Below are positions 2,170 to 60,123 of a DNA stretch of 64,000 nt, piece by piece. Made by a program: the position numbers and the translations under genes. Position 1 is the stretch's first letter. Each line of letters starts with the position of its first letter. The notes under the pieces were generated by a model. That model did not search any database and had not been told where the DNA came from. It saw nothing but the letters and a program-made list of their open reading frames with translations. The stretch lies in the sequence record MZ422438.1. One strand, 5' to 3'.

Positions 2170-4059
2170 TTATGATTTGTATATATTAATAACATCTATA
2201 ATTCTAAGCTGTGCTTCTTGATATAATTTATTCTTCCAATCTTCACCTAAGTCAATAATTTTATTTTTTGGTAATGTTTCTAGTAATTCAATCTTATTTT
2301 CACGTATATCGGTAGTAATTACATCATTATCGTCATATACGGTTAATGATTTATAATTATATTTATAAAATGATAATTCTATAAATCTACCTATATCGTT
2401 TATATTATTTTTTCCTATAACTACTAATTTAGGTATCATATAATCATTATAATCAACTTCAATAGCATTATCGTTATCAATATATTCAATAGTTGTATGA
2501 ATTTTATCATCTTCAGTAATTACTTCTGGAAGATTATATGGTTTAATACTGAAGTCAAAACCATATTTTTCAGAATAGTTATACGTATCTGTAATATTAA
2601 CAGAATAGTTTCGTATTCCTTCATTTTGAATTGAATTAATATCGTCTATATTATTAAATAAATAAATATTATCAATATTTGGTAGTTCTAAATAATGATA
2701 ATTATTGAATTCTCTTTCTAGTACTGTTTCACTAAAGAACATTGAATCAAAAAGATAATCATCATCATTGTTAGAAGTAATAATAAACGTATTAATACCT
2801 TTATTAAGTTTAATTTTATTAGCATATTCGTAAACATTTGTTTGTTCATTATAAATGCTTAATCGATCATGAGATATACCTTGACTATTATATTTATACG
2901 TATATGACAATCCGTTAATATTTACTTTTGCATTACGATTATATTTATCACTAGGATTATATCCAGTAATATATACATATTTCTCAATATCATTTTCTAG
3001 GTTAATCTTAAATTCGATATTACCTTTATTTATCTTTACTAATTTATTAGATAATAAGTTATTATAAGTATTATCAACAATCTCTGAAGTATTATCATCA
3101 TTTACTGTTTTTAATGAAGATGATAATTCATATCCTGTAATATTTCCATTAATTTTTATAGGATCGATGAAATGATTATATATTGGAACATGGTTAATAA
3201 TTGCTTTTCTAAGAACTAAAATATTAAAATCTACATTTTTTGTATTTCTAGGTTGACCTGACTTTAATAATATTTCTTCAATATAATCATTATGGTCAGC
3301 ATTAATAATATTATTGTTGATTTGATTCTGAGTATACATACTATACTGTTTAGGAGTTATATCTTGCCATACATTCTTGTTATTACCATTAGTTGTTAAA
3401 CTTCTTTCAATATTATTAATAAAGATTGAAGATGTTTTAGATGTCAGATTATTACTTCCCATATATACCGTCATATTGTAATTATTCATTTCAGGAATAA
3501 ATATCTTCATTCTTAAATACCCATCTTCTAATCGAACATAACCCTTTCCAAAATATTTTAAATAGTCAGAAGTCATTCGTGATCCAGAAGTTTTAGTATC
3601 TTCATATTCAAATATTGTTCCATCATAACATTCATATACATAAGTACCGTCAGCTAGTATAGACGGATATATGACTCCATCATTATTGATATAACCATGA
3701 GTAATGATATCCTGATCAAAAATAATATCTTTTGGATAGTGTGGATGACAATAACACTCTCCATTACAATTACACCCATTATCACAGTCATCATCATCGT
3801 CATCACCATTATTAGGTGGAGTAAATTTATTATTAATGTAATTTACCATTGTTATACTGGTAGGATCAACAATACTTTGAACTTTTCCATTCTTATCAGT
3901 AAAATTTATTTTAAAATCTTTATGTTCTAATAAGCCATCATGATTAATATCTTTAATTAATGTCTTAACATTAGAATCGATTGATGTAATATCAATTAAT
4001 CCTGAGTTATGATCATCAATCATTTCTTCAATACGATAAACTTTCATATTTTGTTTCAC
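2170..4059 (-). CDS. Putative receptor-binding/tail appendage protein with carbohydrate-binding-like beta-sandwich modules
   Basis: N-terminus homologous to the collagen-fibre gene; LNKGINTFII...LFDSMFF resembles CBM6/35-type ends; late promoter upstream. Confidence 0.5.
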   Translation of the reverse strand: MKQNMKVYRIEEMIDDHNSGLIDITSIDSNVKTLIKDINHDGLLEHKDFKINFTDKNGKVQSIVDPTSITMVNYINNKFTPPNNGDDDDDDCDNGCNCNGECYCHPHYPKDIIFDQDIITHGYINNDGVIYPSILADGTYVYECYDGTIFEYEDTKTSGSRMTSDYLKYFGKGYVRLEDGYLRMKIFIPEMNNYNMTVYMGSNNLTSKTSSIFINNIERSLTTNGNNKNVWQDITPKQYSMYTQNQINNNIINADHNDYIEEILLKSGQPRNTKNVDFNILVLRKAIINHVPIYNHFIDPIKINGNITGYELSSSLKTVNDDNTSEIVDNTYNNLLSNKLVKINKGNIEFKINLENDIEKYVYITGYNPSDKYNRNAKVNINGLSYTYKYNSQGISHDRLSIYNEQTNVYEYANKIKLNKGINTFIITSNNDDDYLFDSMFFSETVLEREFNNYHYLELPNIDNIYLFNNIDDINSIQNEGIRNYSVNITDTYNYSEKYGFDFSIKPYNLPEVITEDDKIHTTIEYIDNDNAIEVDYNDYMIPKLVVIGKNNINDIGRFIELSFYKYNYKSLTVYDDNDVITTDIRENKIELLETLPKNKIIDLGEDWKNKLYQEAQLRIIDVINIYKS

Positions 4060-5591: not shown

Positions 5592-8500
5592 TTAATATCC
5601 CGCTAATATAGGAGTTATACTATTAGGATCAAGTTTAAAGCTTGGTTGATCTAATTTATTATCTCTATCATTTTTATGATCATTTCTAGTTTGTTTTAAG
5701 ATGTTATTCGTTTCATTAGTTAAGTTATTATTAGTTGCTTCTAGTCTACTAATATTTCTAATTTCACGAATTAAATCACTCAATTTGCTGATAGAATCTT
5801 TATCATTCTTATCAATTAATTTATACATCTTATCGAGAATATGATTTACTTTTTTAAGTTCATCATATTTTTCTTTATCATATTGGTAAGGTTTATTAGG
5901 TTTAGCGGAACTTCCATTAGATCCATTTTTACCATTAGAACCGTTAGCACCATTAGATCCGTTTTTACCTCCGGAACCATTCTTTCCACCGCCGTTAGGT
6001 TTAGCGGAACTTCCATTAGATCCGTTTTTACCATTAAAACCGTTAGAACCATTACCATTAGAAGAACCACTAGAACCAGGACTATTATCTCCAGAATATC
6101 AACCCTTAGAGCCACCACTTTTAGAAGGTTCAGCGGTTGCTGAAGTTGAATTACTACCATCTTTACCATTAGAGAAGTCTTCATTATCTCCTTTTAGACC
6201 GTATTCTTTAGCATATTTACTGTTAATACGATCACCGATAGCTTTCTTTTCTTCTTCAGTTAGTTTAAAGTTAGCTCTTGATTTTTGTTCTTCAGTTTCT
6301 TCATTAACTTCTCCAGTACCAGACAGTTCTGCACTACCATCAGCAGTACCTCCAGTGTTTCCACTAACTCTACCAAATCCTACTAATCTACCAAACCAAT
6401 CTGCAGGCATATTTAATGCATCACTACGAATGTTTACACCTTTACTAGATTCAGCATTGATCATTTTCCCTTCACTGATATAAATACCTACGTGGGAAAT
6501 AGAACCATCTGGGTTTGCTGAGAAGAATATCAAATCACCAATAGATAGTTCATCTTTTTTAATTCTTTTAGTAGCTTTATATTGTTCTCTAGAAGTACGT
6601 GGAAGTTTCTTACCGACAGAATTGTATGCATTCATAACTAGACTAGAACAGTCAAAGGTCTTAGTTTTACCTAAACCAGAACTTGGTCCCATTGAGTATG
6701 GAGTACCGATATACTTCTTAGCATATTCTACGTCTTTATATCCTATAGATTGTCCGTCAGTTTTATCAGAACTTCCATTATTGGACATTACAGAACCTAA
6801 ATTACTTCCAATATCTTTACTGGTATTTTTATTTTCTTTACTAGACGATACTTTTTGGTTTGTAAGATCTTTTAGTTTTGCACCCTCTTCTTTAGCACGT
6901 CTTCTTAATCCCGCTTCTTGATTGGTTCCTGCATATTGACCCATATATTGACTTAATCTTTGTTTTTGGACTAAATCAATAATTTGATTGTCTGATAGTT
7001 TACTAATATTTTTTCTGGCTAATGCACGTTTAAATAGACTAGTTGCACCTCCAGCACCATGCTGTACTGAAGCACTTAAAATTAATTCTTGAATACCTCT
7101 AGATCGACCACTTAAATCAGTTCCCAGTGCTTTATTTATTTTAGCTAGTCCTGGATTATAGAAGTCTTTTTGGAAGTATTCTTGTTGTGCTTCACCAAAT
7201 GCTTTATTTTGTCCTAATTTTTTCCAAGAAGCATCAAAGCTAGATGAACCTGGAGAACCACTAAGCTTTTTAGCAAGGTCTGGATGAGCTGATCCTAACC
7301 ATTTAACAAAATTAGCCAGTGATCCTTTAGTAGATGATAATTGGTAAATACCGTAAGATTTACCGCCGGCATCTCCAACCCCACTAGAGATATATCCCGC
7401 ACCACTAAAGTCTTCTTTACCAGTTTCATAAAATCTGGCTACTGAACCAAAGTCTTTTGAAAGATTCTTTCCAGCTCCGGAACCGCCAGAGTTTCCACCA
7501 GTCGATGCAGCATTTGCATTAACGCTACCTAATCCTTTTACAATATCTTTTAATTTATCAGTAATTGATGAGAAGAAATTGCTTATTTTACCCCATACTG
7601 ATTTAGATGGTTTATTTGGATCAAATCCATTTTCCGCCATATTATATAATGCTGCAACCGGAGTAAGACTGAATAAAGATTTAGCAAATGATTTAGGATT
7701 CTTTTTCATATCTTGACCTACTCTAGATGACATTAATTTACTGTATTCAGAACCCATATTCATAACCATTCCTAATGGAGTAGCATCTAAAAAGTCTTTA
7801 AACTTACTTTGTTCTTTACCATCTTTACCTTTATCATCTTTCTTTTTCTTTCTAGCATCATTGAATTTTTCAGCAATACCCATTGGAGTTAATCCGTAAT
7901 AGTGCATCTTTAATCTTATTTTTACGTTCTTCGGATTTTTTCTCTTTATCATTCTTTTTCTTTTCTTTTTCAGCTTTATCACCTTTAATTAAATCCCCAA
8001 TAGAAGGTAATTTAGGAGTGCTTGCAGATTTACCTGATTTAGCACTCGACATTCCTTTTACAATTGATCCTACTAATATAGAACCTAATATTGCTGCACC
8101 GCCAACAGCTAATGCCGGTCCGGCAATTGGAATTCCAGATACTAATGATAGTAATGCCCTTCCACCATTTCCTGCAATCCTAAGAGCTGATGAGATTCCA
8201 GATACTAATTTTTCTCTGGTTGCATTAAATATTGCAGTTCCTCTTTCAGTAACAGTTCTAAATGCTTCAGTTTCACCTAGACTTTTCATTCGAAACATCA
8301 TTCGAGCAATTATTCCTTTTTTACTTTCTGCGGATTCTAGTGCAATATCTTTAGTTGCTGAAGCCATTCTCATTTTAGCTATTAGATTTTCAGTTTTTTC
8401 ACGAATGGAATTGATTGTACCCATTGGATCTTTTACTGATGAAACAATTGATCCTCCAACTTTTTTAGCAGTATCCATAGCAAGACCGCCTGCATTTTTG

Positions 8501-37714: not shown

Positions 37715-38814
37715 ATGAAGATTGAAGAAAAAGAACGTGAAATGAAACATATTGGTTACATGAAGATATTACTTAATGTTGCTAAAGAAGAATTTCCAGA
37801 TATGGAAGAAGATGTATTAAAAGAAAAGATTAAAAATATTGTAAAGGATAACATGAAAAATCCAAAAGCAATGATTGATGATCGTGAAACAACATTATTA
37901 GGATTAGACAAATTTATCGTAACTGAGAAACCTATCATTACTGGTTTTGGATCAATGTATTTAACTCATGATAAGTTTGATAATCTATTAGCAAAATTGG
38001 TTGAATATATTATCAAAACTCGTAAAGTTTATAAAAATAAAATGTTCGAACACGTTAATGATGATGATCAAACACTGAGAAATATGTATGATATGTATCA
38101 ACGTACCATGAAGATCCTAGCGAACTCATTTTACGGATCATTGATCCAAAGTAGCTTTATTTTGTATAATCCGATATCTGGTCCGTCAGTTACTTATTCT
38201 GGTGTTGATATTATCACTACTGCACTAAATAATTTTGAGAAATTCTTAGCAAATAATATCTATTTTAGAAATGTAGATGATATTATTGTATATATGAATA
38301 ATATTAAATCTGAAAATTATAGTATGGATAAAGTTAAATTTAAACAATCCCGTAGTAAAGATCAGATTATTGATTATTTATTTGATAAGACAGATAATTA
38401 TATGGATGAAGATAGAATATTATTGATGACAATGATGAATAATTATACGGATGAAGATTTACTTAAGCTTTATTATAAAAATAACTTCATTGATTTATTA
38501 AAAGAATCTGATATTGCAGATAATTATTTTAAAGAAATTCTAAGTTGCTATGAATTTACTGATCCAAACGATCCTCCTGCTAAAGTTATCTCCACTAATG
38601 AAATTTGTACTATTAAAGGAAAAGATAACGGTAAAATTAAAGTTAAATTATCTAATGGTGAAATTTCTCTAGAAGATCCTAGTAATATTTTAGATTATAG
38701 GGAAAAATTAGATAATTTATGGAATATTATTAGAAATATTGTATTCTACAATTATCAAGATTTCTATCGTATGGAAAATTCTGAAGAAAGATTAAGAAAA
38801 ACAGTGCTCGTGGT
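37715..38814 (+). CDS. Family-B DNA polymerase (phiKZ-type), exon 1
   Basis: Motif B KILANSFYG and SVTYSG; ends ...KTVLV-GT at the group I 5' splice site. Confidence 0.85.
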
Positions 38815-39295
38815 TAATGTATAGCCACACTTATATAGTAATATATAGGTTAAAAATTCTATTAATTGCTGGAAAATCCTAAAGCTTATTTAACTACAAC
38901 GGAATCAGTAATGATAAACGTGAATGTTGTCGAAAGACTGAAAAAATAAATAAGATTAATACATGGTGAAATAAAAGTACTATAATATATAGTATCCTAA
39001 ATATTAATTATAATGGATGATCAGCAGCAGTATTTCTTTAAGATTATAAATGAAAGAAAAAAGAAATGTTGTTCAACGACTATCAAAAGATTATTATATA
39101 AATAATAATTTAGTAGAGTAGAGCCAAGCTTTTGGGTTAGTATTTAAGAGATATTATCTTAATGTAAAACTATTAAATCGAAAAATAGAATTATCCTTTA
39201 GTAAGGATAAAGATATAGTCTGTTCTTTAAGGAAATCTTAAAGAAGTTCATAAGAGAACTGCATAAGAATTAGCGCACTTATGTGAACACGAAAG
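38815..39295 (+). mobile_element. ORF-less group I intron (IA-like, 481 nt) in the DNA polymerase gene
   Basis: P1 GUGGU/GCCAC with a U-G pair at the splice site; P aattgctggaa; Q atcagcagc; R gttcaacgacta (39071-82); S aagatatagtct (39210-21); terminal G 39295. Splicing restores VVDTDSNF. Confidence 0.9.
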
Positions 39296-40220
39296 TGATA
39301 CCGACTCAAACTTCTTGTATCTCAATCACTTTGTCGATTTATTCTCAGAAATTTATCCAGATATTACGATGAAAGAAAATGATAAATCTATTGTATCTGC
39401 CATTAATACTATTATGTATATTGTTACTGAATGTATTAATGAAACGTATTACAAGTATGGAATGGAACTCGGTATTCCAGAAGATAAACGTGGACTAATT
39501 AATATGAAGAATGAATTTCTATATAAACGTTTAATGCTAACAGACGCTCAAAAGAATTATGCTGGCGTAATTTTAATGCAAGAAGGAAATATTCTTCAGA
39601 CTCCTAAGATTGATATTAAAGGATTAGCAATTAAGAAGACAAATACGAATAAACATGTACGTGAAGAATTTTCAGGAATTCTTAAAGATGTCATTCTTGA
39701 ATCAGATAAGATTGATGGTTCTGAATTTATTACTAGATATAAGAATCTAGAAAAAGAAATTCGAAGATCTTTAATGAATAGTGAAATCACATTTACTCTC
39801 CCTAGAACTGCAAATATTAAAGAAAACTACGTAGCACCATATACGCAAGCACCATACAAAGGTGTATTAGTATGGAACACATTATATCCTGATAAAGAAA
39901 TTAACTTACCAAACAAAGTTAATCTTATCAAGCTAAATATTGAAACTTTTGATGATATTGAAAGTAAAACTAATGATCAAGATCTAATTGAACGATTTAA
40001 GAAAGTTTATGAAGATGAGGAATTGACAAAAAAAGGAATTACTTATATTGCTATTGAAGCAGAACAAAAACATATTCCTGAAGAAATCATTCCATTTATT
40101 GACATACCTGAAATGGTTAAGACTCATGTATCATCAGGATCCAAACTAATGACGTCATTAGGATTCAATCCATTAGTAATTAATGGATCATTATTCCCAA
40201 CAAATATTATTAACTTTTAA
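39296..40220 (+). CDS. Family-B DNA polymerase, exon 2 (spliced product 674 aa)
   Basis: Starts T-GAT ACC GAC TCA (DTDS, motif C) in frame with track ORF 39315; MKNEF and QKNYAG follow. Confidence 0.85.
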
Positions 40221-55167: not shown

Positions 55168-56130
55168 ATGCATATTGATTATGGTATTGAAAAGAATATA
55201 TCAAAGTACTTACATGAAGAATTACTAACTGAAGATATCTATAATCATCCTTTATTAAAAAAGATTGATGATGAATTTCAGAAAATATTAGATGAAGATA
55301 ATATTAATGATACTAAACTACCAGTAACATCATATAAAAAAATTCAAAATATAATTAAATATGTCTCAACTATATTTAATATAAATTTAATTATAACGAT
55401 TGATAACGATAATATCCTTACTTATGGAATGATGACATTTATTCCGGTTAAAAATCTAACAAAGATATCTAATAATATAAAGAAGATTGTACTTCAACCA
55501 AAAACTGGTTTTGAATATATTAAAACTGAAGTTATTGAAATTAAAATACAGAAAAAATTAATATCTTTCATTAAGGATCCAAACTTACTTATAAGAAATA
55601 ATAAAGTTCCAAAAAATTATACTCCTAGTGGAAGAATATTGACCAGTATACTTCTTCATGAAGTAGGTCATCATATATTCATTGGATTTGAAATTAAGAA
55701 ATCTATTAAAAATGATAAACTTTTTTCAATTAACGGTGGTAATGGTAAAGAAATAACTATACCTAGTAATGTTAATAATAATAAATATGTATTAACAAGC
55801 ACTATATTATCTATATTAACGTTAAGTATTTCTATGCATAGTTATATGAGAAGTGAATACAATGCGGATAACCTACCAATACAATATGGTTATGGTAAAG
55901 AAGTATTTTATTTTTCAGAATTAATGGAAATATTAGAAAAACAAAAAAGAAATTCAATTCTATTAAAGATTAAAGGATTTCTAATGTTTGGTAAAGATAA
56001 TTATTATAATCGTAAAATAAAGAATCAAGTAATTATTATGATGAAAAAAGAATTAAATAATGATAATAATAGTCCTAAAGATAAGGAAATTATTATAGAT
56101 AATTTAAAAACTATAGAAAATCTTGAATAG
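55168..56130 (+). CDS. HExxH zinc-metallopeptidase-like protein
   Basis: ILLHEVGHHIF and a downstream SEYNAD (ExxAD) motif. Confidence 0.6.
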   Translation: MHIDYGIEKNISKYLHEELLTEDIYNHPLLKKIDDEFQKILDEDNINDTKLPVTSYKKIQNIIKYVSTIFNINLIITIDNDNILTYGMMTFIPVKNLTKISNNIKKIVLQPKTGFEYIKTEVIEIKIQKKLISFIKDPNLLIRNNKVPKNYTPSGRILTSILLHEVGHHIFIGFEIKKSIKNDKLFSINGGNGKEITIPSNVNNNKYVLTSTILSILTLSISMHSYMRSEYNADNLPIQYGYGKEVFYFSELMEILEKQKRNSILLKIKGFLMFGKDNYYNRKIKNQVIIMMKKELNNDNNSPKDKEIIIDNLKTIENLE

Positions 56131-56225: not shown

Positions 56226-56900
56226 ATGCTTAAGATTAATATTAAAGATAATCCTGAACTTAAAAAGAATATTACTTCAAAAAATAAAAAACTCTTTTAT
56301 GATTTCAATACAAATAATCAATCTTTCCTAGAATTAGCTATTGAATTAAAAAGATTGGGAATCAGAAATAATAAGTTACATTTAGTTTTATATGATAAGA
56401 GTCTTTCCGGAGTAGATCCGTATGACCCGAACTTAACTGATAACGTAAAGGCAAGAATTGTTAAAGAGAGCATTATTAATTTTTGGTACTTTATTAGGGA
56501 AGTAGTTCGTATTCCAGTTCCAGGATCTTCAGTCCATTTTGCTATTCATAGAGGGAACCTTGCAATGTGTTTCTGTTTATTAAATAATTTAAATACCGTA
56601 TTAATGTTACCTCGACAACATTATAAGACATATAGTGCTGTAGGTTTTTATTTATGGATTGAATTATTAGTAGGTAGAAACTATCAAATGATCTTTTCAC
56701 ATAAATCATTAACGGATAGTATTGCCAATCTAAAAAGATTGACGGCTCTATTTGAACTATTACCGACATATATGACTGAACCTATCTTAAATAGTAAGAA
56801 TGATAAGAATGCTGAAACTATTTTAACAATTGACTCAATAAATAATACCATTAGGACAATTGGTCCAAGCACAGATATTGCTTCAGCAGATAAGTCAGGT
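56226..56900 (+). CDS. terL: Terminase large subunit, exon 1
   Basis: NFWYFIREVVRIP, Walker A-like LPRQHYKT; ends ...SADKSG at the group I splice site. Confidence 0.85.
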
Positions 56901-58203
56901 TAACTTAATTTTTCGGCTTGACTATAAAACTTTTTTAATTGCTGGAACATCCTTAAGTCTATTAAACTACAACGTAACTGGTAACGGTAAGCGTGAATGT
57001 TTGAAAATTAATAGAATTGGACAATCAGCAGCCAAGCTTCCAATGATTATTGGATGAAGGTTCAACGACTATCGAAAGGGTAAATTTATATTTTAAATTT
57101 AGAACTGAGTAGAGTAGAGCCAAGACAAAAATTTGCAAGTTTACTTGGTTAGTAATTAAGTGACATTAACTTAATGTAATTCTATTAAATCGAAACGGAA
57201 AGTATAGAATAAAAATAAATATATATTATAATAATGATGAGATAATTTATATCTTCTTTAATTAAGATTATTAAAGAGGTGATTATTATGGTAAGAAAAA
57301 ACACAGAATTTGATCTAGTTAATAGAATATCACAAAAATTCAGTAATAATGAATTTACCTATATTGAAGGGTTTAATAGAATGATAGATAAATGTAGATT
57401 TAAATGTAATAATTGTGGAAATGATAATTATTATACTTCGCCATCCATATTATTGGATAAAAATAAATCTATATACTGTAATCTATGTAATCCTGCAACT
57501 TTACGAAAAAATTCATTTATGGATAATGTTAATAAAAATTACACTGTTTTAGAAAAACCTAAAAATAATAAACAAAATATATCTGTAAAGTGTAATTTAT
57601 GTGATTTCATATTTAAAACAAGGTCACAATATTTAACAGCTATGGACAAACCTAGTAAAACTCGAAATTTGTGTCCTAAATGTAATGCATCAAATTCTGA
57701 AAAAATATTTGCAAAATTTCTTGATTCTCAAAATATTAATTATGAAATGCAGAAAAAGTTTAAAGAATGTATCGGTATTAATAATAGAGTCACTCCATTT
57801 GATTTTTATATAGATTCAATGAATCTAATTGTTGAAATTGATGGAAAACAACACGATTCATTAAAATATGCATTCCATAGAGATATTAAAGAATATGAAA
57901 GAACTGTTGCTAATGACAATATTAAAAATAATTTTTGTAGTGAAAATAATATTGGATTAATACGTTTAAGATATAATTGCAAAAGTAAAGAAATTGAATT
58001 CATGGAATCAATTATTGATGCAAAATATATTCCAAACGTAAAATTATCCATAAATGCAAATCTTATTAAATATTAGATATAAATCTCATCAATTTATAAT
58101 TCTGACTCTTCAAATAAAATTTGGAGAGTTTATTATTTTTAGGTTTTTCTATAAAGATATAGTCTATGGGGAGAGAAATCTCTTAAACTTGTTATATTCT
58201 AAG
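56901..58203 (+). mobile_element. Group I intron (IA-like, 1,303 nt) with a homing endonuclease in P8
   Basis: P1 UCAGGU/GCUUGA (56916-21); P aattgctggaa; Q aatcagcagcc; R gttcaacgacta; S aagatatagtct (58154-65); terminal G 58203. Confidence 0.9.
57288..58076 (+). CDS. Intron-encoded homing endonuclease: Zn-ribbon repeats plus a Vsr/DUF559-like (EDxHD-type) nuclease domain
   Basis: Four CxxC pairs; FDFYIDSMNLIVEIDGKQH; ATG 57288 after AAAGAGGTG (the track start at 57279 is GTG). Confidence 0.8.
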   Translation: MVRKNTEFDLVNRISQKFSNNEFTYIEGFNRMIDKCRFKCNNCGNDNYYTSPSILLDKNKSIYCNLCNPATLRKNSFMDNVNKNYTVLEKPKNNKQNISVKCNLCDFIFKTRSQYLTAMDKPSKTRNLCPKCNASNSEKIFAKFLDSQNINYEMQKKFKECIGINNRVTPFDFYIDSMNLIVEIDGKQHDSLKYAFHRDIKEYERTVANDNIKNNFCSENNIGLIRLRYNCKSKEIEFMESIIDAKYIPNVKLSINANLIKY

Positions 58204-58218
58204 CGAGGAATGACCGTT
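58204..58218 (+). CDS. terL: Terminase large subunit, 15-nt micro-exon 2 (RGMTV)
   Basis: CGA GGA ATG ACC GTT joins KSG and PLIWLDE in frame, giving KSGRGMTVPLIWLDEYAF (Walker B region). Confidence 0.8.
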
Positions 58219-58890
58219 GTATGCGCCGTAATGAGTTTATAAAAACTCTAATCAATTTTGAGAATAACGGAATGATAGATAGCAAATAATCTTGAAACGT
58301 TATATCTAATACTCCTACATGCATATATTTATTAAACGGACTATATGTGTGAAGTTAGGTGAAGTCAGTTGAACCACTCCCCTATAACGGGAAACTTAAG
58401 TATTATATACTAAGAGTGTATAGACTGGGATGCGTTATAATATGGTAAGGATATTCTTTAAAAGAATTAGACGAATCAATGAATTAAAACCGTTAAAAAT
58501 TAATCTAACAGGTTAATGAATACTAATAGGGATGAGTAAGTGAGCGGTTATGAAAATCCTATTTAAGTTATGCTCTTAAATTATTATTAGTGCGGTAGAG
58601 TTGGTACCTAAGTTATAACTATGCTATCAAAATTGAAAAGGTGGAAACTAGGAAGATCGTAAAGATGTTTAATGTCTGATCTAATAAATAGGAAATGATT
58701 TATGAATCTTAGTGGCAGCAGCCTGTAGTAGTGATGAAGCTCTTGTAATGAGAGTGGAGTGAAGGGGCATAGTCAGAGATTATATTAACCAAATAATCTT
58801 TGATGGAACGCTGTATACGATGAAAGTCGTACGTACAGTGTGAAGTGGGGGAAAATCCGGAGATAATTTCAAAGGATTACCTATCACTAT
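58219..58890 (+). mobile_element. ORF-less group IIB intron (672 nt)
   Basis: 5' GUAUG; EBS1 AGCGGU (58543-48) pairs with exon ACCGUU; EBS2 UAUUCU (58452-57) pairs with GGAAUG; D3 gcagcctgtagtagtgatgaagctc; short D4; D5 acgctgtatacgatgaaagtcgtacgtacagtgt; D6 bulged A 8 nt from the 3' AU end. Confidence 0.9.
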
Positions 58891-60123
58891 CCGTTAATAT
58901 GGTTAGATGAATATGCGTTTTTAAAATATAATGATACGGTATTTAAAGCAATGCGCCCTGCTTTTACAGAAGCAAGTAAAGCTGCAAGCATGAATGATAC
59001 TCCGTATTCAATACTTATTACAACAACGCCTAGTAATTTAGATTCCGATGAAGGAAATTCATGTTATAATCTTATACAAAATGCAGCTAGGTTTGATGAA
59101 AAGATGTATGATTGGTACTATCAGTTTGGTCCAGAATACCTTCAATCATACTTGGATAAAAACTCTGGTAATGATTTTATATATATTGAATTTAGTTATA
59201 AAGAATTAGGTAAAGATGATGAATGGTTAGAGAGTCAGATTCGGGCAATGTTAGGTGATAGACTTAAGGTTAAGATTGAATTATTATTAGAATGGGTTTC
59301 TAGTAGTGAAGATTCAATCTTTAGTGAAGATATTATTGAATCTCTTGAAGGTAATATTATAAAAAGGGAAAATTATGCAGGATCCATATATTTATGTGAT
59401 GGAACATATAAACTAGATGTTATTAAAAATCCTATAAACTTATTAACTAAAACATACGTTATATCAATAGATATTGCCGGAGGATTAGGTAAAGATAATA
59501 CCGTTGTAACCGTTATTGATCCAGTAGACCTTAATACGGTAATGGTATTTCAAAATAATAAAATTACTGTTCCGGAATTAGAAGATCTTGTTACTGATCT
59601 AGTGTTAAATTATATTCCAAACGCAGTAGTTATTCCAGAACGAAACTATGGTGGGGAACAACTGATTGATTATATTATTAAACATAATTTAATATCTAAA
59701 AATCTTTTTTATGTAACAAAACAAATAACTACTGAAAAGACAATCTTACAAGAAAATAATGTTTTTAGAAAAAGAAGTAATAAAGTTAGAAAAGAAAAAA
59801 GGGTATATGGTATATATACAACAACTAAGACTCGTGATATAATGATTAATACTATCCTTCCAATGATTGTTTATGAAAGACCCGAATTGGTAAATAATGC
59901 TTCCTTATTTAATGATATTAAAACGCTAGAAAGAAAAAGAAATGGTAAGATTGAACATAAGTCAAATCGCCATGATGATAATTTATTTTCATATCTGGTA
60001 GGATTATATGCACTATTATATGAACACTCGATCAGTAGGTTTGTGGATATTATTGATAAACCCGAGTTAAATAAGGAAGATGAATTAGTTGATACCGTAA
60101 TAATACGGGTCAACATCGTTTAA
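58891..60123 (+). CDS. terL: Terminase large subunit, exon 3 (Walker B and RNase H-like nuclease); may extend to 60305 via a frameshift near 60095
   Basis: LIWLDE, LITTTP, ISIDIAGG..KD, PERN, HDDNLFSY; in frame with track ORF 58951. Confidence 0.85.
   Translation, partial: PLIWLDEYAFLKYNDTVFKAMRPAFTEASKAASMNDTPYSILITTTPSNLDSDEGNSCYNLIQNAARFDEKMYDWYYQFGPEYLQSYLDKNSGNDFIYIEFSYKELGKDDEWLESQIRAMLGDRLKVKIELLLEWVSSSEDSIFSEDIIESLEGNIIKRENYAGSIYLCDGTYKLDVIKNPINLLTKTYVISIDIAGGLGKDNTVVTVIDPVDLNTVMVFQNNKITVPELEDLVTDLVLNYIPNAVVIPERNYGGEQLIDYIIKHNLISKNLFYVTKQITTEKTILQENNVFRKRSNKVRKEKRVYGIYTTTKTRDIMINTILPMIVYERPELVNNASLFNDIKTLERKRNGKIEHKSNRHDDNLFSYLVGLYALLYEHSISRFVDIIDKPELNKEDELVDTVIIRVNIV

Follow-up and report, generated by a model that had tools for sequence, protein, structure and literature searches.

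How can a large terminase subunit be made from a gene that is interrupted twice within 15 nucleotides (nt) by introns of two different classes, and what keeps such a pair of introns together? Both questions are raised by the large terminase gene (terL) in a stretch of 64,000 nt from sequence record MZ422438.1, which was analysed whole and is called the window here. The region belongs to Listeria phage LPJP1 (MZ422438.1, 100% identity), a jumbo phage of 223,580 base pairs (bp) that infects Listeria grayi; a window coordinate is the record coordinate minus 62,000. LPJP1 is placed in the PBS1/AR9-like clade together with the Staphylococcus jumbo phages S6, MarsHill, Madawaska, Machias, PALS_2, PB50, LY01, AH12 and SA1. 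The gene is laid out as follows (aa, amino acids; ORF, open reading frame).

56226..56900, plus strand: terL exon 1, 225 aa, the N-terminal part of the ATPase domain, ending ...ADKSG (AAG TCA GGT)
56901..58203, plus strand: group I intron, 1,303 nt, with an in-frame TAA at its 5′ end and omega-G at 58203 at its 3′ end
58204..58218, plus strand: micro-exon CGAGGAATGACCGTT, 15 nt, encoding RGMTV
58219..58890, plus strand: ORF-less group IIB intron, 672 nt, GTATGCG...CACTAT
58891..60123, plus strand: terL exon 3, 410 aa, with Walker B (LIWLDE), the remaining ATPase domain and an RNase-H-like nuclease domain

We consider it likely that terL of LPJP1 is a gene of three exons, split at a pair of adjacent intron hot-spots within the coding sequence for the ATPase active site, that the two insertions were independent events and that the introns now form one genetic unit that would be moved by trans homing.

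The exons encode a TerL of the T4 gp17-like class. Exon 1 matches the profile phrog_32359 ‘terminase large subunit’ over its whole length (E-value of 4.6e-56) and is 53% identical to residues 9-214 of the TerL of phage SA1 (vB_StaM_SA1), which is intron-less. Exon 3 opens with CCG TTA ATA TGG TTA GAT GAA (PLIWLDE), is 49% identical to residues 220-611 of SA1 TerL and matches Terminase_6C (E = 1.6e-4) and phrog_2 (E = 4e-15). By the PHROG and Pfam matches both features of the class are present, namely RG before a Walker B of the form hhhhDE and a C-terminal RNase-H-like nuclease. In a tblastn comparison with the SA1 protein, the match to exon 1 ran to residue 214 (...NKAG) and that to exon 3 began at residue 220 (PMVWLDE), leaving exactly five residues, RGSTV, to which the RGMTV of the LPJP1 micro-exon corresponds. 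The motif GRGxTxPxxWxDE is found in 14 of 16 full-length reference TerLs. When SA1 TerL is aligned with T4 gp17, RGSTV-PMVWLDE lies over RGNSF-AMIYIDE; the micro-exon therefore encodes the loop, conserved as RGxT(V), that directly precedes the Walker B strand. An earlier reading of the letters alone (the initial annotation) had placed the micro-exon in the Walker B region, which the alignment bears out and narrows to this loop. Its exon and intron coordinates and lengths hold base for base, and the classes that it gave to the introns, group I and ORF-less group IIB, were right. The spliced message is predicted to read ...AAGTCAGGU/CGAGGAAUGACCGUU/CCGUUAAUA... across the two junctions (...GUCAGGU/CGAGGAAUGACCGUU/CCGUUAAU... 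as RNA). A twintron, either nested or abutting without an exon, was also considered and is ruled out by the 15 nt exon between the introns, which the protein alignment requires. Introns and a terminase both go unmentioned in the paper on the LPJP1 genome.

The first intron is inserted between the Gly and Arg codons of GRG (site 1). Its guide and core elements are the following.

56910..56922, plus strand: internal guide sequence, UUUUCG at 56910-56915 (P10) and GCUUGAC at 56916-56922 (P1)
56937-56945, plus strand: group I P element, AAUUGCUGG
57023-57032, plus strand: group I Q element, AAUCAGCAGC
57060-57071, plus strand: group I R element, GUUCAACGACUA
58154-58164, plus strand: group I S element, AAGAUAUAGUC

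In LPJP1, GCUUGAC pairs with the last seven bases of exon 1 at 7/7 positions, with a U.G wobble at the 5′ splice site, and UUUUCG pairs with the first six bases of the micro-exon at 6/6. The terL alleles of 16 phages of the PBS1/AR9-like clade, plus that of the ENA metagenome contig L100, were compared. An intron at the same Gly|Arg site is present in eight of these alleles (LPJP1, MarsHill, LY01, Madawaska, AH12, AR9, Internexus and L100), and all eight have a 7/7 P1 with the U.G wobble, a P10 of 5-6/6 and omega-G. Across them the exon variants GUCA, AGCA, AGCC, AGCG and ACUG are each met by a compensatory change in the guide. This covariation of P1 and P10 between alleles is the strongest evidence for the group I identity of the intron, and self-splicing is predicted. 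The long insert between the R element and P3′ may be read as P7.1/P7.2, which would make the intron IA-like. An in-frame TAA at the start of an intron, as here, is usual for phage introns. The Gly codon at the junction is GGT in 8/8 alleles with a site-1 intron, the U being required for the P1 wobble pair; of four intron-less alleles that were listed, three have GGA (SA1 and S6 do not differ here). Either intron gain brings flanking exon bases along by co-conversion, or GGA alleles resist productive invasion.

The second intron lies 15 nt downstream, between the Val and Pro codons (site 2). Its pairing elements, the exon-binding sites (EBS) for the intron-binding sites (IBS) in the micro-exon, and its 3′ domains are located as follows.

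58453..58459, plus strand: candidate EBS2 AUUCUUU, pairing with IBS2 GAGGAAU (58205-58211) at 7/7 with two G.U pairs
58543..58549, plus strand: EBS1 AGCGGUU, pairing 7/7 with IBS1 GACCGUU (58212-58218)
58806..58890, plus strand: group II domains 5 and 6 (D5 and D6), matching RF00029 full-length at 56.3 bits (E = 2e-8; gathering score 40) and ending exactly at the intron end

The model RF02004 (group-II-D1D4-5) also matches full-length, at 58247-58439 with 94.1 bits (E = 5e-19; gathering score 34.5). The intron begins with GUAUG and ends with CACUAU, and has a CGC triad in D5 and a bulged A in D6, 8 nt from the 3′ end. As a control for EBS1, five related introns were each found to hold one 7/7 complement of their own exon in D1, compared with 1/20 for mismatched intron-exon pairs. 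At the position homologous to EBS2, the closest relative, an intron of phage Internexus in the gene of the beta′ subunit of virion RNA polymerase, has UUUUAU, which is complementary to its own exon AUAGAG. The D5/D6 region is 77-84% identical to those of the beta′ introns of AR9, Internexus and MarsHill. Over the first 240 nt (D1) the identity to the AR9/Internexus beta′ introns is 65%, against ~49% to the one intron of LPJP1 that encodes a reverse transcriptase (RT). The plus strand of 58219-58890 holds no ORF of at least 40 aa, and there is no RT/maturase in D4. Such a gene is typical of mobile group II introns and is not required for membership of the class. The intron itself is already published with identical boundaries: Table S1 of Merk, Jones and Eddy, NAR 2025 (PMC12350094) lists in MZ422438, terminase large subunit, an intron at 120219-120890 (window 58219-58890) as IIB, orfless, CGC, GTATG, AT, with pseudoknot interactions ‘+’. 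The neighbouring group I intron, the micro-exon and co-conversion are all absent from that paper.

The two introns share their guide targets. The group I guide forms P10 with micro-exon bases 1-6, and IBS2 and IBS1 take up bases 2-15; the initial annotation had assigned 12 of the 15 bases to IBS2 and IBS1, and this stands, with 12-14 of the 15 being group II guide targets. P10 and IBS2 overlap by five bases, so the two pairings should be unable to form together on one transcript. P10 is needed for the second step of group I splicing only, and IBS pairing is needed all through group II splicing. We infer that both ribozymes have to splice, as was claimed for this locus from the start, and that they may do so in either order but not simultaneously on one molecule to give a functional terminase mRNA. 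In the relatives with a 14 nt exon between two group I introns, this exon consists of P10 (6 nt), P1 (7 nt) and one base, which suggests that the guide requirements set a minimum spacing between introns.

The group I intron also contains an ORF for a predicted homing endonuclease.

57273-57279, plus strand: Shine-Dalgarno sequence AAAGAGG of the endonuclease ORF
57288..58076, plus strand: intron-encoded predicted homing endonuclease, 262 aa, with zinc-ribbon repeats and a C-terminal Vsr-like nuclease

The predicted protein matches phrog_559 (E = 3e-36) and phrog_9084 ‘homing endonuclease’ (E = 9e-22), and matches Pfam DUF559 weakly (E = 0.006; 16.9 bits, under the cut-off of 20.6). The family is very large, with 14,131 cluster representatives at E <= 1e-3. 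The ORF is intact, and in an alignment of 48 sequences the catalytic residues Asp, Glu, Gly, His and Lys (D172, E183, G186, H189 and K213) are invariant and the zinc-ribbon cysteines are kept, and the pattern FDF...ExDGxQH...D..K is common to the LPJP1 endonuclease and the group II-encoded endonucleases of AR9, MarsHill and S6. An AlphaFold2 (AF2) model of the protein has a predicted local distance difference test score (pLDDT) of 85. A Foldseek search with this model gave no match at E <= 0.001; the best nuclease match was E. coli Vsr (1vsr; prob 1.0, TM-score of 0.60 on the target, E = 0.013), with the Vsr-like domains of AbaSI and PvuRts1I next. A phmmer search of the sequence against all PDB chains gave no match at E <= 1, similarity to I-Bth0305I and Vsr included. 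Homologues of the protein carry matches to Pfam DUF4379, DUF723 and CapR, and by these domains the family matches the ‘CapR-like repeats plus EDxHD/Vsr-like nuclease’ outgroup of Merk et al. (PMC12350094). The nearest homologues sit in site-1 terL introns (L100, 38%; Madawaska, 34%), followed by the site-2 endonucleases of PB50 and Machias and, last, by the endonucleases that group II introns of MarsHill, AR9 and S6 encode, whose similarity is confined to the nuclease domain. The place of the ORF within the intron varies. In Madawaska (L006:2650-3902) and L100 (86-1459) it lies inside the P1 loop, with the guide ~1,100 nt into the intron, and in LPJP1 it lies after the R element and before S. 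That related endonucleases share the site but differ in position inside the intron suggests repeated invasion of resident introns by the endonuclease gene.

The relatives fill the two sites in several combinations. The gene is intron-less in SA1, S6, UFV_DC4, BpSp and Goe21. Both are filled in MarsHill, LY01 and Madawaska, where the 14 nt exon separates two group I introns; in MarsHill and LY01 both introns are ORF-less (127 and ~157 nt), and Madawaska has an endonuclease intron at site 1 and an ORF-less intron at site 2. AR9 and Internexus combine site 1 with an intron after the Trp codon, which leaves a 28 nt exon; for AR9 this is based on the GenBank coding sequence, a join of five pieces, and on reading of the sequence. 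The PB50 and Machias genes, besides an endonuclease-bearing group I intron at site 2, contain an intron near residue 241 and, five codons (15 nt) upstream of site 1, a mini intron, with one further intron in Machias at residue 266|267. The site-2 group I introns of the Staphylococcus phages are inserted after the first two bases (GU) of the Val codon, which puts them 1 nt upstream of the group II site of LPJP1. Many of 160 further terL loci from IMG/VR and metagenomes are interrupted within ~36 nt of the motif, and scans of 31 interrupted loci among them at Rfam gathering scores gave group I introns only; neither in these 31 nor in the 16 clade phages was a group II intron found in another terL. 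Since some relatives have an intron at one of the two sites only, and those at site 2 are of group I, the two insertions in LPJP1 would have arisen independently.

Several of these introns were recognized only from their elements. Mini group I introns (127-160 nt) are invisible to RF00028 and were identified by their P/Q/R/S elements and P1 pairing; a search of the PALS_2, MarsHill and PB50 terL loci with Rfam at E <= 0.01 gave nothing. A search of IMG/VR with the exon 3 protein as single query found no relative, and an alignment query was used to collect the IMG/VR terL loci; two junction-specific DNA patterns run over IMG/VR gave no matches, or chance matches only. The mini introns of MarsHill (L004:3123-3249 and 3264-3420), LY01 (L010:6655-6781 and 6796-6951) and Madawaska (L006:3917-4075) are ORF-less, 127-159 nt long, and keep P, Q, R, S, a 7 bp P1 and omega-G. 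If self-splicing, they would rank with the smallest group I introns in nature. Reconstruction of the MarsHill TerL was not achieved by Korn et al. (bioRxiv 2020.12.14.422802); it assembles through the 14 nt exon when guided by the intron-less SA1/S6 TerL. Two IMG/VR loci have a 4.8 kb insertion with several ORFs exactly at the Gly|Arg site (L027:668-5467 and L028:1186-5985), in which no Rfam match at gathering score and no RT or endonuclease Pfam match was found. This insertion may represent a split gene, a degenerate intron of large size or a mobile element of another kind.

How, then, might the LPJP1 pair move? Lying 15 bp apart, the two introns would now behave genetically as a single unit. 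Were the endonuclease to break both strands of an intron-less terL, repair through the homology of exon 1 and exon 3 would copy a block of 1,990 bp, group II intron included, which amounts to trans homing. The 15 bp exon is too short to act as a recombination boundary, and repair of a site-1 break from an LPJP1 donor should therefore copy both introns. There is precedent in phage T4, where MobE mobilizes the nrdB intron, whose own endonuclease is defunct, with co-conversion of up to ~2 kb (PMC2790892); the LPJP1 group II intron is 15 bp from the group I insertion site, compared with these tracts of up to ~2 kb. Wilson and Edgell (2009; PMC2790892) predicted trans homing to be frequent in genes that hold introns both with and without an endonuclease. 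Also counted for hitch-hiking was that the AR9/Internexus beta′ introns, which are associated with endonucleases, resemble the terL group II intron more than does the RT-bearing intron of LPJP1. In LPJP1 itself such hitch-hiking is plausible and would be mechanistically sound. We propose tentatively, as one possibility among others, that the endonuclease of the group I intron is the mobility engine of the ORF-less group II intron, the 1,990 bp block being a single selfish element, and that the overlap of P10 and IBS2 enforces ordered or mutually exclusive splicing. A further suggestion, that the group II insertion breaks the endonuclease target, is redundant while the group I intron is present. 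I-Bth0305I cuts beside its intron insertion site with a footprint of ~60 bp and a high-specificity core of 14 bp (PMC3239194), and by analogy with this core an insertion 15 bp away may fail to protect the target.

A related pair of phages may hold a natural trace of such events. MarsHill and Madawaska are 98-100% identical on either side of terL, and diverge from ~40 nt upstream of site 1 through the micro-exon (4/14 bases) and the site-2 intron (88-93%) to ~500 nt downstream, a tract of ~670 nt (about L004:3080-3750) that is centred on the terL intron cluster. The two also differ in the endonuclease content of site 1 and in the presence of a third intron. The tract looks like a conversion tract that carried neighbouring introns along, and may be a natural record of homing-associated gene conversion; it lends the hitch-hiking idea indirect support.

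A number of observations weigh against three exons whose introns move as a unit. RF00028 matches the group I intron at 56927-57120 with 41.1 bits (E = 1.6e-8), at model positions 47-158 only and below the gathering score of 50, because the ORF puts the 3′ half of the core (P7′/P9) ~1 kb away. The EBS2-IBS2 pairing leans on G.U pairs and is weaker than that of EBS1. The LPJP1 endonuclease has one DNA-binding repeat less than its site-1 homologues (262 aa compared with 328-340 aa) and might be inactive, and LPJP1 DNA probably carries uracil instead of thymine (PMC8460666), which may affect recognition by the endonuclease. None of the relatives found pairs the endonuclease intron with a group II intron, and the closest endonuclease homologue, that of L100, is at site 1 with no second intron. 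The sites are filled independently in relatives: site 1 only in AH12, where the intron is ORF-less, and in L100, where it has the endonuclease and the downstream exon RGMTVPVVWLDE is uninterrupted, and site 2 only in PB50 and Machias. The initial annotation had named a survey of terL alleles as a check on whether the two introns are linked, with independent occurrence speaking against it; independent occupancy of the two sites was indeed seen, and the group II intron itself was found in one allele only. That one allele is the LPJP1 allele, and a search of 5.8 billion proteins found no TerL with more than 50% identity to that of LPJP1. [quoted passage not shown]

Two other accounts of the group II intron deserve to be taken seriously. 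The first is that the intron is now immobile and vertically inherited: it would once have had an endonuclease in D4, as has the AR9/PBS1 beta′ intron, would have lost it, as has that of Internexus, and would persist since imprecise deletion destroys an essential gene. This is possible, and we put it on a level with the tentative proposal that the endonuclease is the mobility engine. The closest relatives of the terL intron, the 1,552 nt intron of AR9 with an endonuclease and the 595 nt ORF-less intron of Internexus, occupy the same beta′ site and point to ORF gain or loss in the lineage, and the lack of any other terL group II intron in the alleles surveyed (16 clade phages; 31 interrupted of 160 loci) fits a rare element that does not spread. 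No ORF remnant, however, was detectable in the terL intron, and that relatives lack it may be due simply to there being no sequenced phages close to LPJP1. Immobility is also compatible with passive co-conversion, and so does not exclude hitch-hiking.

The second account holds that the group II intron reached terL, and stays mobile, by retrohoming or retrotransposition with the RT/maturase of the group II intron in the LPJP1 DNA polymerase gene acting in trans, its nearness to the group I intron being a coincidence of two hot-spots. Besides the published suggestion for the three ORF-less introns, it can call on the one RT-bearing IIB intron that LPJP1 does encode (record 137009-139556) and on the match of EBS1 and EBS2 to the terL site, as retrohoming requires. 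The pairing is needed for splicing anyway, however, and does not discriminate. In D1 the terL intron has only ~49% identity to the RT-bearing intron and is closer to the AR9/Internexus beta′ introns, a lineage with endonucleases and not RTs. Where the group I intron is in place, the sequence upstream of position -15 is moreover intron sequence, so that whatever contacts the protein makes with the distal 5′ exon would not be the same in filled as in empty alleles. We regard this account as unlikely, and as less favoured than immobility. That terL has decayed, or that the intervening sequences are not introns and the fragments are never joined, would suit the GenBank record, in which the three ORFs of the region are separately labelled as hypothetical proteins, but is highly improbable, and the pseudogene reading was rejected: LPJP1 forms plaques and has a single terL (n = 1), both intervening sequences match ribozyme models with intact catalytic cores, and the junctions restore the conserved GRGxTVPxxWLDE in frame.

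Some features elsewhere in the window may be recorded here. Exact matches to the R and S elements of the terL group I intron were found in the window in that intron and in one other only. This second group I intron, which is ORF-less, is at 38825-39314, with R at 39071 and S at 39210; ORF 37715-38824 lies before it and ORF 39315-40220 after it, and at gathering score it was not picked up by Rfam. The gene that it splits looks like a family-B DNA polymerase, to judge from a DTDS motif that resumes at ~39287. Just upstream of terL, between the capsid gene and terL, an ORF at 55168-56130 encodes 320 aa with the motif HEVGHH; it has no Pfam match, and GenBank lists it as a hypothetical protein. 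A gene annotated as ‘zincin protease’ (AR9_g118) lies between capsid and terL in AR9 too, followed by two further genes before terL.

The arrangement is of interest for several reasons. If both ribozymes must act within 15 nt, terL of LPJP1 would offer a compact natural system for interference between group I and group II folding and guides, and would bear on the minimum length of an exon between two ribozymes. If the three-exon, hitch-hiking account is true, ORF-less group II introns of phages could persist through the homing endonuclease of a neighbour rather than through an RT. LPJP1 has already been engineered (PMC8460666) and infects a benign host, L. grayi, which brings mixed infections and knock-outs of the endonuclease and of the RT within reach. 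Micro-exons also explain the mis-annotation or failed reconstruction of terL in LPJP1 and MarsHill-like phages, in the latter of which they are present but unrecognized.

How much of this is new is best seen beside known systems. The initial annotation knew of no described example. For the juxtaposition of a group I intron, a 15 nt exon and a group II intron this stands, as none was found described; it does not stand for the parts, since the group II intron, the presence of both intron groups, I and II, in one phage gene, and terL micro-exons in the AR9 annotation are known already. What is new is the recognition of the group I intron with its endonuclease in LPJP1 terL and of the 15 nt exon, nearly all of it guide target, that separates it from the group II intron. 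The entry of Merk et al. (PMC12350094) concerns the same element, and differs in that an RT in trans is proposed and the group I neighbour goes unmentioned. The virion RNA polymerase beta′ gene of AR9/PBS1 (PMC12350094, Fig. 5A) is alike in having both ribozyme classes in one essential gene of the same clade and endonucleases of the same zinc-ribbon plus Vsr-like family; there, in contrast, the group II intron carries its own endonuclease and the exon between is ~190 nt, whereas in LPJP1 it is ORF-less and the exon is 15 nt. The multi-intron terL genes of AR9/Internexus, MarsHill, LY01, Madawaska, PB50 and Machias share the two hot-spots flanking the RGxTV codons, micro-exons of 14 nt or 28 nt and an endonuclease-bearing intron beside ORF-less ones, but their introns are all group I. 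The EDxHD-Vsr endonucleases such as I-Bth0305I (PMC3239194) are likewise from a phage group I intron and combine N-terminal DNA-binding modules with a Vsr-like nuclease domain; the LPJP1 protein has the motif ExDGxQH, not EDxHD, and no sequence match in the PDB. In trans homing (PMC2790892) and collaborative homing, as would be the case in LPJP1, a working endonuclease mobilizes an endonuclease-less neighbour by co-conversion; by this analogy the helper, free-standing in the known case, would in LPJP1 lie inside a group I intron, and the passenger would be a group II instead of a group I intron. The tandem (‘side-by-side’) introns and twintrons of fungal mitochondria (PMC6279837) are also two adjacent self-splicing introns at a known homing site, but they are organellar, usually of one class, and nested or exon-less, whereas LPJP1 keeps a 15 nt exon in its mRNA.

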